DNA of 63,576 nt, filler included, from Choristocarpus tenellus KU-1152 (Eukaryota > Protista > Phaeophyceae): assembly GCA_964200185.2 (NCBI GenBank). It is 11 parts of 11 records of this genome, joined end to end, with 100 filler letters (N's around TTAATTAATTAA, not from the genome) between each part and the next. Parts side by side here need not be neighbours in the genome. Positions count along the whole stretch, not along the records: positions 41,481 to 47,786 come from CAXNAD020008426.1; 10 more parts are not named here. One strand, 5' to 3'. Position numbers and translations under genes: made by a program. The notes under the pieces are model-generated. The model searched no databases. It was not told the DNA's origin and was given only the letters and a program-made list of their open reading frames with translations. This document shows, piece by piece, positions 41,481 through 50,600 of the stretch. The stretch's first letter is position 1. Each line of letters begins with the position of its first letter.

Positions 41481-41566
41481 GATTTGAGTCTTCTTTTTCC
41501 CGGGGCGGGGCCACACGACCACCCGGGGGCGAGCCCCCCCCCCCCCCCCCCCAGAGACTTTGAGTC
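41481..41566. mobile_element. Related TIR end at contig start
   Basis: Poly-C followed by AGAGACTTTGAGTC. Confidence 0.55.
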
Positions 41567-41704
41567 TACAATAGGCAACTCTCAGCAGTGTGAGTTGCAA
41601 CACAAAGCTACCATCGTTGAACTTTACCATGCAATAGCTTTCTATTTACTTGTGTGTTGTCTTCTCCCTCACCTGTGTAGCCCTCTCAAACCCCCTTTCA
41701 CCAG

Positions 41705-41848
41705 GATGCACCTAGGAACTGCAGCAACGGAGAGGTTTACCAAACCTTCAAAATTGTCCTTCCATGGACGCGCTCAGATCCCCCCCCCTATATTGTGGAG
41801 CAGGGGGCTCCATCGCCCACCAGTGAGGAGAGAGGGTCGGGTGAAGAT
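41705..41848 (+). CDS. Possible isolated exon of an unknown gene
   Basis: 144-bp open segment between a pyrimidine-rich CAG acceptor and a GTGAGT donor (DAPRNCSNGEVYQTFKIVLPWTRSDPPPYIVEQG...). No recognisable domain. Confidence 0.3.
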
Positions 41849-42739
41849 GTGAGTAGGAAGTCTTGCTTGCAGTGAGCCATCAAACAAAACTATTCATCAT
41901 GTAGTTGTACTTAACCCTCTAGAACTGTCTGAAGATCTGGCTCAGTGGATATAGAACCAACTATATGGATTATGTGGGATTATATATGTATGCTTAGAGT
42001 ATCTGAATAGGTACTCAAAGTATACTGTATCACTTACTATAAATGTGCAGAGCAACAGAAGTACATGGGTACTAATAAATATCTCTTCCATTTTGTACAG
42101 CACTGTGTACTTCTATGGATGGAGAGTATGAAAGTGGGAGTCCAAAATTCTAGCATATTTTTGTCTTGTGGAATGCCCAGTCTCAGCGATGAAATGCCTA
42201 TCATAATTGCAGAATAGCTTCCTGAATACAGAATATGTCAGATGGGAAGGGTCAACATTATTGTATAATCTTCACTTTCAAGGCTTCTGATTGTCCATAA
42301 AATGGATCATTAGGGATTCTATTTATTGTTTCAGGAACTCTCCAAGTCAATTCTCTTTAGTTAGTGTAGGTTAACGAAATATGATCAGAAATTCTAAGAA
42401 ATTAAATCTCTTGCGTTTACCCAACTTCTCACTCGTTCGGTCATCCACTCATCCTACCTACCCCCCATAGATGTATTATTATTATTACTATTTTTTTTTG
42501 AAAATATTATAATTTACTATATTTAATGTTGTGGTGTATTGTTATTTTGTTCTGTTTTATTTTTTCACTCACATTTCATTCTATTATGTTTTTTTTTGTT
42601 GACGAAAAAGTACAAAAATAACTCAAGTGATGTTATATTAAGTACAGTTACATTACATAACTTCTAATAATCCCCTTATTGTTGTTATAATAATTATTAT
42701 GATTCTTGTTTTTTAGTATTATTTTCATTATTCTGCCCT

Positions 42740-42840
42740 CTGACATTTTGGAGATGTGTCAGGAGGGAAACCAATGAAAACTATACACATGTCAGTATAA
42801 GCCCCAAAGAAATAAAATGTCGTAAATGTGAAAGCTAGTA
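42740..42840 (+). repeat. Dispersed ~100-bp repeat
   Basis: CTGACATTTTG..ATGTGTCAGG..AAACCAATGAAAAC..ATGTCAG..CCC.AAAG has diverged copies at about 20890, 56070 and 56325. Confidence 0.55.
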
Positions 42841-44662
42841 TTATTAGTATTATTGTTATTAATATCACATTAGTATTAGAGATGACACACTAATGGTCAA
42901 AAAAGGAGTCTAAGGAAGGAAATAAACACCTAAAAAAAAGGACAACAAAAACCCAAAAAACAGTGGAAGAAAAAAAAGAAAAAAAGAAAAGAGATGATAA
43001 GAAGAGTAGAATCCGCAGGAGAAAAATACTGCCATCACCCCCATATACACTGAAGGGGAGTATAAGGGAACGAAAATAGACAAACGATGAAAGAGGAATC
43101 AGTCCGAAAAGAAAGCAGTTTTCAGCAGACAGTGATGGTGATGTTGTTGGTGGCGTGTGCTATCTTACCTCCTGCCATTGTGTGTGGTCTCACATGTCAG
43201 TATAAACCAGAAGGAAAAAAATATGCATATTATTTTTCAACTTCAGAGTGAGTGATTGACTCTGGTATGTTTTTTGTATTGATACACAATAGCGATTTCC
43301 TGGAATTAGTTAGGAAAGTTTCTTTCTGGTGGACATCAAGAAATGTTAGACCCAAAACTATCCTAATCCTTTTGTACAGATGAGGTCATAATCAGCACGC
43401 CGCTAGGGAAAACAACTCAACAAGCAATATTTATGGGTGGTAGATTAAGAAAAGGATGAATTTATGTCCAATTCTCCCCTTTGTTGGTCACACAAATGAG
43501 ATCTTCATAGCACTCTATCACCATACCTGTGGTAGTGATAACTTCCTGCACCGCTATGAAGTATAGAGAGGAGGAAAGTACTTCCGGAGCATTATACTAG
43601 CGGCCTAAAAAAGATTCTAGCTATAACAGCTAGTTTGACAAGTACCTCAACGAAACGTTATCCTCGATTTTTTGTTCCCACCGCATGCCAAATCCTGCTT
43701 GGGTATTGACTTGTGCCTTGACTGGACATATCCTGCCAACATCCTTCCGTGTCACTCCTCCACGTTTCTATATTATTGCAAGATATCCGCATATCTAAGA
43801 CATCCTCATATCTGCGTCATTGGTCCACCAAGCCAAGTACCTCTCAGGCTGGTCACCTACTGTCAAAAGTAAGGCTGTTGATAATATATAATCCAAACTA
43901 GATGTGGGCAAAAATCGAAGGGTGCATCAAGCTGGAGAAACTCTTTCACAAATTTTCGGCTAGGCTATTCTTGTTGACAGACCAGTCAGCAAAGCACGCA
44001 GCACGCGTATGTCTGAGATGTTGCAATTTCGACACCAACAGGTCAGGCAGTACGAACAGAATTGTTGCATTTTTTTTTCTCAGCACTCCACAGCAATGGC
44101 CTGACCAGTCGTGAAAGATCTAGCCTAGATTGCAGTTCAGTTGCATATGTTTCTAAGAGGTCCAGTCTCGGGCTATTAAGGTTTGTTAAAGGTCTGCTCT
44201 AGACTTCAGGTAGGTTGTTTTTCTAGAGAAAGGCCCAGTCACAGCCAAATGGAGTTTGCGAAATGTCTGGTTGGGGAAGCAAGCCAGTTTAATCCCAGAC
44301 CCAGGTAGCTGGAATGTTCTAGTCCACCAATCCTACCTTTGTTGATAAAATCAGATACTCATCTGAGTCGAGCACAGGAGATTTGCTTGGGGCTAGCTGC
44401 AGATGTTCCACCCTCATTGCTTGAGTCATGAGATAATGTGGTACTGGTGGTGCTACTGTTATTGACCCGGTGGAGACTCAATGTCCACAAGTTTTTACAT
44501 GAATTCTTGTGATTTTTTTCAATTGTGTTGTCCAAACCTTTTTTGTATATTTTACGATACATCTCCTACCGTCCACCTTCCTTTCATCTTTCCTTTCCTC
44601 TTCTACATAGCAGCTAAATAAAAAAACGAGTAGAAGATAGTAGTATAGGATTTGGGTCATAA

Positions 44663-44780
44663 CCAGGAAAAGTGCTCTTACATTATCCATCCGACGCATG
44701 CAACCAAATCATCCAAAAATCGCGACATGAAAAAAATTGAACCCAAATGGACAGGCGCCACCCCCCACATACTTTGAGTC
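44663..44780 (-). mobile_element. MITE family A, partial inverted copy
   Basis: Diverged reverse complement of about 24329-24447, ending CATACTTTGAGTC. Confidence 0.75.
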
Positions 44781-45646
44781 AAAGTTGAAATTGTGTTTTT
44801 TTAAACAATAGATAAAGTATTAAGTCATTATCCATCCACCGAAACATAGGCAATTATGATGTACTCCGAGTAGTTAGATCTACCTTCAGGGATTAGACCC
44901 ACTCCCTCCTTCTACACGCACAATCCTTTCCCCTGTCCCTTCTGGTGGTACCACGGCATGAGAGCGACTGCAACTTGACCTGGCCTGACCTCTTTAATCC
45001 ATATCTTCATCACCAGGTTGTCCCCTTCTTGTTCAGTAGGTTGAACCGCACCGTACCATAAAGGGTAAAGGTCCCTGATATTCACCTATATGAGACAAAC
45101 ATGAGTTGTGAGCCCTTCATTCTCTCTGATGGTTCAAGGTTCTTGATGACAACCTTATTTGGATGATTGTTTGCTGTTATGCCTTGGGCATGGTGATAGC
45201 CTAGCACAAGGGTGTGAGGTCCTGGTGTTGGATATTTTCTTGTGGAGTAGTTATCCTCTACCCTGCTAGCAGGATGGATTGGGAGGGATGAGTAACAGGG
45301 GAAAGTGTGAGGGTAGGTCGCAGATTGGACCCTTGAAGCCATCAACTCACAGTTCGTTGTCCAAGGCAACACTCCCTCGTAACGTCGACAAACCCTTGGC
45401 ATCATTTGTTGTGGAACATCAGGTGTCTGCAGTTCTAAATGTTGTAGGTGTGTGTTCTACTACCACCATTATTATGTTCCCTCTCGTTTTTCCTCCTAGA
45501 TTCGCGCGAACGTATACCAATCCTACAAACTATTTATATTATAATAATTGGTACGATCACCATCAACAATAACCCACACAGCGCGCGGAAAGACCTGAAG
45601 GTAGAGAAGGTAGGTATAGTTCACAACAGAGACCGCTTCTCCAAAC

Positions 45647-47695
45647 ATGGCTACGCCAAAGCGCACCCGAACGGATGGGCAGCTTTCTAAAGAGGACTAT
45701 AATGCAATCAGTGAGGCATCTTCACCAAGGGTGTGTGTGTGTCGCTGTCCAACTAACCGCTTTGTGTTGGTATATAGCAATTTTGACGCTTTGCTGTTCG
45801 TCCTTGGTGTCCAAAGAGAAATTCAACTTCTCGCTGAAGCAATTTGGAGCGTTATTCGTTAGAGAGTGTAAAGGGAAAGCTTCTATCTTTTCCTGCTCAG
45901 TATCGGTTATGGTGCCACTTGTCGGTGCTTCCTGGAGTCAGGTGTCCTTTGCTCTATCCCCATAACTAAACACAATACTTTGTACCCAGGACTGAGTGTC
46001 GCCACTGTGCTCAATTGTGCTTATCAGAAAATCGCACGAATACGAGCCCATCATTGATTTTGATGATACAGTACCTTCGCTTGCTACCTGTTTCCCTTCT
46101 CTGCATCTTGCTTTCAGCCTACGGGCAGCTTCCCAGTGGCAGACAAAGCCACCATGGCGGTGCGCAATATTTCACGGACTGGGGCACGGAAGATCAACGC
46201 TCTGAACAAAAGGTGCGCTCCATAGTCCAATTAGACAGGTGGTTTCCCCACGTTTGTCACTTTTGAGAATGGCGTCGTCACCTCAAGTGCATCTTCCACT
46301 TCGATTTTAGGTTGACAACTCGCTTTTCTGCGTCAACCCCACGAAACAACATATTGCTCTAGCGTTATCTCGGCAAAATAGTCCTTCTCTAGCGCGTTGT
46401 AAATTGGCTATAACCGACCCTCTTATCTTTGTCATTCGTATGGCACAAAAAAATATACTTGCAATGTGAAGAAAATGTGAGTCTGAGGTTAACCCACCCT
46501 TTCTCAGAAGCATTTCCTAACACGCCAACCCAGTTCTCTTTTGCTCTTCTTTCCCACGCATCTGTCGGACTGGGTGCATTTGTCTACCAGCTTCGACACC
46601 TCCGTGATGAGGGAAATTGCGGAGTGTCCCAGTGTTGACCTCTCACCCCTTATGTCGGATTACCTATCTTACTCCTCTCAGTTGCAGAGAAGGTATGTTG
46701 GGGTAAATGATATCCAAGATTAGATACGTTAAGGAATGCAGAGAAGTAAACTGATATATATATATATACATAAATTAAGGGAGATTATGTGATATTTTTC
46801 TCTTGTTTCATGCTTTACCGTTTGTGGTGCATCCATAGCCTGTGAATCTATGAGGACGTCAAAAAACGTACTGTTCCATTTTTTGTTTTGTTTTGTGCTT
46901 CCAAAGTAGCACAGTGAGTTGTGTAGCATAGTAGGTTGCACCTGATATTCTCCGCACACTACACTGGATTGGTCTTGCAGTGTTGAGTCATCCCTGTGTG
47001 CTTTTTGAACTCTTTGGATGATACATCCTTGTTACAAACAGATTTGGTGTAATGGTATGAATATGTTATTCTTTATGAAAATTAAGGAGAGATCGAGAGG
47101 GAGGTTGTACTCTGCTGCAAGGTTTACTGTGAGTTGATGCGGCGATACAATTAATGTGGGCGTTGGTATCAGTTTTGGCGGTCAAATGGTAAACGACTTG
47201 ATTTTTGATTTTTTTTCTCTCCACGTTGTGCTGCTCTGAGCAGGCACTTTTTTGTGCATCCGTGCTTTACTCTATGGACTAGACTAGGGGGGCTATGGGT
47301 GCTGCTGTACAGTAGTTACTTTGTGGATTGCACATTGGCTACTCTGTTGATCTTGCTGGACACTTACTTTAGAGCATTGAATAAAGTCATGAAACGTTTT
47401 TTTCCTCAAAAATATTTGTCCTATAGCATAAAGATAGATGGGAGTTCTACTTTTTCGATGGTGGGCAAATCAGTTGGGAATTTTGTGGTCCAGGGGAGCA
47501 ATGTATTGCAATTTTTTTAGTTTTGCACACACATGCACACACACACACTCTCTCTCATATGCACACATGCATGAACAATATTGCATATTTGCACAAATGA
47601 ATAAAAAAACCCATACACTTGCATGCTTTGTAACTGCCAGGTACTTCAAGGATGTGGGGCAAGTAATGATATGTGGAAATGGAGACTGTGGTCAG
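45647..47695 (+). CDS. Nup50/Nup2-like N-terminal region fused to an RCC1 repeat protein (5' four exons, 3' truncated at the contig end)
   Basis: Exons 45647-45730, 46118-46212, 46591-46692 and 47641-47695, all GT-AG, phases 0/2/2. The 112 aa read MATPKRTRTDGQLSKEDYNAISEASSPRPTGSFPVADKATMAVRNISRTGARKINALNKSFDTSVMREIAECPSVDLSPLMSDYLSYSSQLQRRYFKDVGQVMICGNGDCGQ. Confidence 0.8.
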
Positions 47696-50600
47696 GTCAG
47701 ATGGATTTTGACCTCGTCCCCCCCTCCCTTCCCCACCTTCTACATGGCATGGTTCCCTCTGATCATGGCGCAAGGAGCCTGTGCAGNNNNNNNNNNNNNN
47801 NNNNNNNNNNNNNNNNNNNNNNNNNNNNNNTTAATTAATTAANNNNNNNNNNNNNNNNNNNNNNNNNNNNNNNNNNNNNNNNNNNNATATATATATAAAT
47901 CTCCCACAGTACCCCTTCTATGTGCATGTAGGTGAACATGGCACAAATTGATGGAGTCTTGTCCGGTCCGGGATTGAATCGACCGACAGTCTGTGGTGAC
48001 CTTGCTGACTTGGTGCACTGCACAGTATCACCAACCACAAACTCGTGGGCTGCAGTCCGCTGGAGGTTCCTCCAACCGTCTCCAGATGCACTCGTCTTTT
48101 GAGATGAGGGAGTGAGCACCCAGGACTCGCCAGTAGCGTTTTTGTCACCCTGCTTGGTCAGATAGAAATGGAACATGTACCACCAGATGATTGTGTTGGG
48201 AGGGAAGAGAGAGAGAGACTGATAAAGACAGGAAGGTACACTTGTAGGTCGTAGCAAACTCAGGTTGGGTACAACAGTTGGTTGCTTTCACAACATACCG
48301 CCATGAGCCATAGGTGGTGGACCTCTGATTGAGTGATGCATGGGTTGATCTACAGTCCATCTCCTTCAAGGCTATCAACAACACTTCAACATATGAAACA
48401 TTGGAAACAAGCCAACTAACTTGGTGTGTGGTGATGGTAGTCAATACCGCATGGGCCCTTTGTACTTTACTCAGCACATCCTGGATGACTTTCTCTTGGT
48501 CATACACGGTCTTGGGACCTCCATTCTTCCTCCTGCGTGTATCAGGGAGGGTGTGTGTGAGACAGGGATGTTCACACACATTTTGACTAATCAAAAGCTG
48601 GGAGAAGACGTTGATAGGCTCACAGGTCATGTTTCATAGGGAGTAGATCGTGAGGAGGAAATTGACAATGGCATCCTCATATAATGGTAGGTGGATGTTA
48701 TTCCACCAAACAGAGGGAAACGGCATACTTCATACGATGAGCAAGTCTACTTTGTGGGTAAAATGTAGTGGGGAGCTTGCGCAACGGAAATCAAAAGACG
48801 TGTACAAGTGAATACATGACCGCACTCACGTGATCTGGGGACGGACAGTCTCTTTGACGATCTTGAGCAGTGGCAGCACAATCGTCGTGATGGCATGGTC
48901 CTTCTCGGCTTTATCAGACCTCGTCATCATTTGCAGCTTGGCCTCTATTTTGGCGCATTGAAAGCTCACCAACCGGATACGTTCCGAGGCGTTTGGTGTT
49001 GATGCCATTGAATCAAGCATGTTACTCATGGCGCGAAGGAGCCACAAATGGATGGGTCTGTGGATGTCTTTTCGTGCTCTCCCCACAGTGCAACCTGAGG
49101 GGGCAACGGTGGTGTCGTCTGTCCTCCTCTCCTCCCCAGAATCTGGAGTAGTTGGGGATATTCCGACAGGAGACGGTTCTTGGCGATGAAGCGCCGAGAT
49201 TTGGACCTGTGTGTATGTTTTGGAGGAAATGGGATGGCCATATAGGGTGAAGGCAATGATATTGCAACGCCACAAGGGAGGTATCATCGAGAATGGTCGT
49301 AATACGAACATTTTGTGTCAGACCGATGGCAAAGAGAGAGAGAGAATATCAACGGGTAGTGGATAAACGATGGCAGCAGCCGAGAGGAGGGTGGTGGTAC
49401 CAACACCGCGCACAATCAAAGGCTTTGACCTACCCCATGGGTTGGCCCAACTGAGCCATTGGTAGTCGTTGCACCGTCGGATGACATCCTCGGGCGAAGA
49501 CAAGAAGGAGGAAGTTCGATGCTCGTCAAGGGAACAGGGGTCACGGACTTGACCATCGCCACCTTGGGATGATTAGAAGTGTTCATGTGCCGGACGAAAA
49601 CCGCCTTCGCGAGGCGAAGAACATGCCCCACCCAGACAAGGACGGAGCGCTTGATCCCCATTCCTGCGACTATTGTATTGAAGGCCAGCCTCAGAAGAAC
49701 CGTCTGGAGGAAAAGGAGGGCCGATGTGATGGGCCACAGTAGGAGAGGCATTTTCGTCCTCTAAAGAATGTGGATTGTGTACACGTGCTTGTTGCTTCAC
49801 TATTGCCAGAGGTGCACGGATCCGCGAGCGTATCGCAGGCGAGCTGGTGTATGTTGAGTGGTTGTGACAATGAAGTGGTGGAGAGTGGGGAGGTTCTTTC
49901 GAAACGCCAGTCGTTACACCACGGGGAATGGGAAATACAAAAAATATGGAGGTATGACGTATGCACGTTGTTGAGTTTGATCGAGTAAGGTCAGGTTGTA
50001 CGTATCCAATGGATTTTTGGTCAGAGGCAAATATCGTAGAGGGTTAGGGTTAGAGTTAGGAGGATTTGCTAACTGGGATTGGAAATTATCACAGCAAACT
50101 TGGTTGAATGGGCGGGTAACCTTGTGTTAGATTGGTCTTGACGCCCCTTTTATGTGATGTTCTTCCGGTATGCGTATTTCTGGGTTTTATCCTGGAGGAG
50201 AAGTGCCCCCGAGTCTGCCTTTTACCTGGATTGCAGGCAGATCCTCTGCAGAGAGTATGTTGGGGATAGAATATGTACCAGCGAAAACTGTAGAGCTGGG
50301 GAAAACAGCAGCAGAAAATTTCTGGCCAAGGACACCTTTTTGGTGTGCATGGAGGGAGGGGAGGGAGGTTGCGAATGAACGTATGAAAGCGGCATTTTGA
50401 CTGTGGATCGTGGAAGAGAGACCTATAGCCTGCCCGCTCTGATCGGCAATTGGGGCTGTACCTCTAGGTTTGTGTGCAAGGACAGATATCTGCTCCTTCG
50501 TTGTCCTTGAAGAAAATCCATGACCAGAGGCAAGTCCTTGAGTTCAGTGAGGTTGTACAGGTCACACAATCAGTACGATTTTTCCATCGTGAAGATATGC

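Follow-up and report, generated by a model that had tools for sequence, protein, structure and literature searches.

Does Choristocarpus tenellus KU-1152 (Phaeophyceae; assembly GCA_964200185.2) possess a gene that joins a Nup50/Nup2-type N-terminal module to an RCC1-type propeller in one polypeptide? The locus that raises this question lies at positions 45647-47695 of the window, the whole stretch of DNA analysed (63,576 nt, filler included), in the piece that occupies positions 41,481 to 47,786 and comes from CAXNAD020008426.1. We found that the locus is the 5′ end of a nuclear gene that is expressed and spliced, and in which about 94 N-terminal residues lead directly into an RCC1-type blade 1 with no long spacer. 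On balance, we lean towards the reading that the gene encodes an RCC1-type propeller, most likely a RanGEF, with a condensed Nup50/Nup2-type N-terminal module.

Recomputation of coordinates and phases gave four exons on the + strand in a single reading frame, with 336 nt or 112 codons in total. The preliminary description, which had proposed four in-phase exons, was correct in their coordinates and peptide strings, according to the recomputed phases and exon-wise translations. Three public runs (X1, X2, and X3), none of which is on record as RNA, were compared with positions 45400-47786, and a contig of X3 was found to skip the introns as given below; (S) and (R) in the translations stand for codons that introns 2 and 3 interrupt.

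45647-45730, + strand: exon 1, 84 nt, 28 codons, phase 0; translation MATPKRTRTDGQLSKEDYNAISEASSPR; contains the start codon, a basic KRxR motif, and an acidic stretch.
45731-46117, + strand: intron 1, 387 nt, GT..AG; skipped by the X3 contig (joint 45729/46117, cut +1).
46118-46212, + strand: exon 2, 95 nt; translation PTGSFPVADKATMAVRNISRTGARKINALNK plus 2 nt; contains the GxF...RxI segment and the beginning of the ALN motif; X3 contig positions 36-129, depth 787.
46213-46590, + strand: intron 2, 378 nt, GT..AG; skipped by the X3 contig (joint 46210/46589, cut +2).
46591-46692, + strand: exon 3, 102 nt; translation (S)FDTSVMREIAECPSVDLSPLMSDYLSYSSQLQR plus 2 nt; a candidate Nup50-type pore-targeting helix; X3 contig positions 130-231.
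46693-47640, + strand: intron 3, 948 nt, GT..AG, with AT and CA microsatellites; skipped by the X3 contig (joint 46690/47639, cut +2).
47641-47695, + strand: exon 4, 55 nt; translation (R)YFKDVGQVMICGNGDCGQ; contains the first half of the RCC1 blade-1 motif; X3 contig positions 232-288.
47696-47786, + strand: beginning of intron 4 only (GTCAGA..., GT at 47696), running to the edge of the piece; the X3 contig departs from the genome at 47695.

The splice-site strings of introns 1-3 are pyrimidine-rich at their 3′ ends, and the GC content is 46-57% in the exons versus 39-45% in the introns. The context of the ATG at 45647 is good for a start codon (AAACATGG), and the same frame has a TAG 30 nt further upstream, at 45617. 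Several minor features were observed in intron 3. The (AT)n and (CA)n microsatellites lie at 46754-46772 and 47524-47548, and the read layout skipped 46871-46899 and 47524-47567 as repeats. At position 47214, the window has T and all three runs have C, reflecting an assembly error or a different individual.

Contigs of X1 and X2 are collinear genomic sequence across the region. One X2 contig departs at 46370, within intron 2, into 30 unlike letters (TGCAAAATAGGGATAAAATAGAGAATCACG), which may represent an insertion or a haplotype variant in sample S2. X3 yielded one 756-nt contig at a depth of 787, whereas intronic contigs of the same run have depths of 2-6. This contig joins 45730|46118, 46212|46591, and 46692|47641, every joint being GT..AG, and its product is about 252 aa long. 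Beyond 47695, it runs on with CTGGGCTTTGGCATGGACTCTGTGGCAGAT, which is translated in frame as LGFGMDSVAD and belongs to an exon outside the piece; the spliced message codes for ...ICGNGDCGQ|LGFGMDSVAD across the junction between exon 4 and this next exon. These results demonstrate that the gene is expressed and spliced, and the contig looks like spliced mRNA. The junction of exons 3 and 4 had been named beforehand as the place where the fusion could fail; since the X3 contig joins exon 3 to exon 4 at 46692|47641, that test has been answered. X3 is not on record as RNA and contigs show neither strand nor ends, and on these grounds one could suppose that the 756-nt contig was misassembled or derived from a processed DNA copy, the gene model not being one mRNA. 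However, the three GT..AG joints of the contig are exact and in the order of the genome, the depth on exons is far above that on introns in the same run, and the frame is kept through all joints into the next exon, where the expected RCC1 residues are found. We consider such an artefact very improbable.

The transcript contig does not reach the start codon. It begins at 45695, and zero X3 contigs lie on 45640-45694. The depth of 246 in the bin 45640-45719 equals 787 x 25/80 and was therefore contributed wholly by the 756-nt contig. Transcript cover of exon 1 is confined to 45695-45730, and since the contig begins at 45695, codons 1-16 (45647-45694, including KRTRTDGQL) have no transcript cover; this part, with the ATG at 45647, is placed in the gene only by the genomic ORF, the start context, and the in-frame TAG at 45617. 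The start of the contig could correspond to an alternative acceptor (3′ splice site), to another 5′ exon, or to a branch or break in the assembly graph. An AG dinucleotide at 45693-45694 directly precedes it.

The N-terminal tail of RCC1 proteins is normally basic and contains an NLS through which importin-alpha is bound. In the gene described here, GNGDCGQ of exon 4 and LGFG, encoded by the exon that follows in the spliced contig, together form the full blade-1 signature G-x-G-D-x-G-Q-L-G-x-G after a basic tail. An RCC1-type blade start had been proposed from exon 4; the signature is now complete because the next exon supplies LGxG, and this confirmation is independent of the reasoning behind the proposal. 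The best match in PDB (177,635 sequences) for the 22-aa stop-free stretch around exon 4 was likewise an RCC1 blade 1, namely residues 42-56 of Drosophila RCC1 (3mvd_K, LGNVLVCGNGDVGQL, E=0.1), which form the first blade of that protein just past its basic tail; being weak and 15 residues long, this match is a lead rather than proof. A Pfam search with a short, 27-aa stretch at exon 4 gave no match. The sequence evidence suggests that the gene is likely of RCC1 type and that its propeller is probably a Ran exchange factor. The known repeat region amounts to 28 residues (18 in the piece and 10 from the loose end of the contig); the other blades of the presumed propeller, with the catalytic residues of its putative GEF activity, would lie outside the piece.

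The shortness of this repeat region, together with the E value of 0.1 and the fact that GQLGxG is common to the whole RCC1-like superfamily, would also suit a Nup50-like head on a non-RanGEF RCC1-like-domain (RLD) protein with other partners, or on a short or degenerate propeller. Nevertheless, W-G stands at this position in most other RLDs, and RanGEF orthologues have the form G-N-G-D-x-G-Q-L-G-x-G where the propeller begins, behind a basic tail (3mvd_K 42-56). We regard a protein of this other kind as quite improbable. When compared with RCC1/Bj1/Pim1/Srm1 (e.g. Drosophila RCC1, PDB 3MVD) over the first blade, the product has the same order of a basic N-terminal tail and then blade 1, the blade reading VGQVMICGNGDCGQ|LGFG here versus residues 42-56 of 3mvd_K as given above. 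The tail itself is different: it is about 94 aa long, versus about 20-40 in those proteins, and unlike theirs it carries motifs of Nup50 type.

The residues of Nup50 that act on importin-alpha and chromatin are K3, R4, R38, and R45, those for the binding and stimulation of RCC1 are G25, F27, K36, and R38, and aa 144-189 form a conserved region of 46 aa for pore targeting, with Nup153 and ELYS as its binding partners (Holzer et al., PMC8634129). The same study bears out the statement in the preliminary description that vertebrate Nup50 binds RCC1 and stimulates it (PMC8634129). We compared these residues with the product, numbering it by counting along the four exons in order, with the following result.

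Nup50 K3, R4: K5, R6 here, adjacent and near the N-terminus (exon 1); a match, with codons outside the transcript contig.
Nup50 G25, F27: G31-x-F33 here, with identical +2 spacing; in register.
Nup50 R38 (F27 + 11): R44 here (F33 + 11); in register.
Nup50 K36: A42 here; not in register.
Nup50 R45: A51 here, with R52 adjoining (one residue off); not in register.

Equivalents of five of the seven literature-named residues (K3, R4, G25, F27, and R38) are present with the same internal spacing, and in the second segment (G25, F27, K36, R38, and R45) three of five are in exact register. This segment is followed by the stretch KINALNKSF...CPSVDLSPLMSDYLSY (also KINALNKSF...DLSPLMSDYLSY), which spans the junction of exons 2 and 3 and has the pattern ALNxSF...DLxPxxxDYxxY. 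It closely follows the pore-targeting region of human Nup50, which we take to have the pattern ALNxS...P..DLxP...DY..Y. The KR motif, GxF...RxI, and ALN...DYxxY thus stand in the same order as in Nup50. The importin-alpha-type segment passes directly into the helix (...RTGARKINALN...), and the long linker between the two Nup50 motifs is absent, just as had been noted at first reading. The 112 codons contain no FG dipeptide run or FG repeats. When the piece was shuffled and read in six frames, each of the patterns GxF...RxI, DLxP...DYxxY, and GxGDxGQ, all written post hoc, turned up about 0.0005 times per shuffle. With that reservation about how the patterns were chosen, their presence in the right order in one transcript appears not to be due to chance.

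Homology was also searched for with the separate exons. Exons 1, 2, and 3 searched singly by hmmscan against Pfam, including PF08911, matched 0 families at E<=10, the queries of 28-33 aa falling under the HMMER filters, and phmmer of the same exons singly against PDB gave zero matches at E<=10. With exon 3, phmmer against 1.84 billion representative proteins gave 0 matches at E<=0.001, and a feature search of the ESM Atlas returned only unrelated short proteins, all below 0.9. No record was found by exact-product look-up of four window ORFs. When the stop-free ORF around exon 4 was compared with a word-indexed protein collection, among targets of 0.55-1.75 times the query length, none had three words in common with it, and a metagenome scan with the exon 3 ORF found no relative confirmed by tblastn. 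In a further metagenome scan, DNA encoding CGNGDCGQ was met at 26 loci; all were rejected as chance matches (non-coding frames, mostly on GC-rich contigs). The blanks are weak counter-evidence, because peptides of 28-33 residues are below what the HMMER filters pass. As regards the proposed likeness of the first 94 aa to Nup50/Nup2, the agreement of motifs stands, but profile and pairwise searches with single exons added zero matches to it. A Nup50-like head is plausible but unproven, and kinship would be argued from motifs.

The same observations could be accounted for by an ordinary RCC1-family gene with a longer NLS or chromatin-binding tail, whose Nup50 likeness would be chance or convergent short linear motifs, with neither shared descent nor shared partners. 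A basic tail that binds importin-alpha through an NLS is normal for RCC1 proteins, KRTR fits the classical NLS K-K/R-x-K/R, all exon-wise profile and pairwise searches of libraries containing Nup50 were blank, and two of the seven Nup50 residues named in the literature are out of register. On the other hand, three specific patterns of such low expectation follow one another as in Nup50 inside a span of 90 residues, the spacing of G-x-F and of the R at F+11 is that of functional Nup50 residues, and the blanks weigh little for exons as short as these. We consider this explanation unlikely, if less so than the two alternatives described above.

If the gene indeed encodes a RanGEF with a Nup50-type head, the usual short NLS tail would be replaced by a condensed module of three parts. 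The first would be the basic KR(T)R motif, and the second GxFxxAxxxxMxxRxI, the vertebrate counterpart of which holds the residues that bind importin-alpha and those that bind and stimulate RCC1. The third, directly next to it, would be the ALNxSF...DLxPxxxDYxxY helix, similar to the one by which Nup50 is directed to Nup153/ELYS. Three roles of the tail are proposed by analogy, because functions have been mapped to the corresponding Nup50 residues. As a strong importin-alpha ligand, the tail would serve for import of the enzyme and its cargo-like release, and it might also displace NLS cargo. Through the helix, the exchange factor could be docked on Nup153 or ELYS and so be brought to the nuclear basket or to post-mitotic chromatin bound by ELYS. 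Exchange activity could be raised by a contact in cis between the G-x-F/R segment and the propeller of the same chain, similar to the contact of Nup50 with RCC1 in trans. More tentatively, we propose as a possibility that this lineage covalently joined the Nup50 N-terminal module to the RanGEF, with RanGTP production at the basket or at ELYS-marked chromatin and activation in cis.

The product shares with Nup50/Npap60 of vertebrates and Nup2 of yeasts (PF08911) the N-terminal KR pair and a G-x-F...R-x-I segment with the spacing of G25, F27, and R38, and its helix-like ALN...DLxPxxxDYxxY stretch may resemble the 46-aa region that binds Nup153 and ELYS. In contrast, the linker of about 100 residues between the conserved parts of vertebrate Nup50 is missing, the equivalents of K36 and R45 are out of register, and profile matches are zero. 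Over the 112 codons compared, the helix is followed here by an RCC1 blade, whereas Nup50 goes on towards a Ran-binding domain. RanBP3 also binds RCC1 and raises its exchange activity; the citation of Nemergut 2002 that we met concerns export-complex assembly only. RanBP3/Yrb2 and Nup50 are cofactors that bind RCC1 and raise exchange in trans, and a fusion in cis would hard-wire that relation. These cofactors are separate polypeptides with a Ran-binding domain, whereas no such domain was seen in the 112 codons here and the link would be covalent; the C-terminus lies beyond the piece and may carry a distal Ran-binding domain.

The raised exchange activity of RCC1 in the presence of Nup50 is a recent (2021), biochemical finding made in vertebrate extracts (PMC8634129). 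A natural fusion, if true, would be independent evolutionary 'Rosetta stone' evidence that Nup50 and RCC1 act as a unit. Because the motifs alone would survive in it, with the linker, FG repeats, and Ran-binding domain lost, the fusion would also indicate which Nup50 segments matter, and structural and kinetic studies could make use of a compact single chain. If the likeness consists of short motifs only, the gene would be an RCC1 gene of the ordinary kind whose NLS tail is long. Full-text searches gave no account of a fusion between Nup50 and RCC1, nor of any protein in which PF08911 and PF00415 occur together, although such a protein may stand uncommented in domain-architecture databases; the RCC1 fusions in the Tetrahymena fusion paper are myosin-RCC1 and kinesin-RCC1 only, and a paper on the trypanosome pore had no bearing on the question. 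If real, the gene would bring known parts together in a new variant rather than represent a system of a new type.

The 4.1 kb that precede the gene showed no ORF, RNA family, or gene-like feature, and an Rfam search of the piece returned nothing. This upstream part contains a run of 19 C at 41534-41552, close to the edge of the piece, and an AT-rich low-complexity block of about 500 nt at 42470-43005, with TAT/TTA and AAGAA-type tandem repeats.
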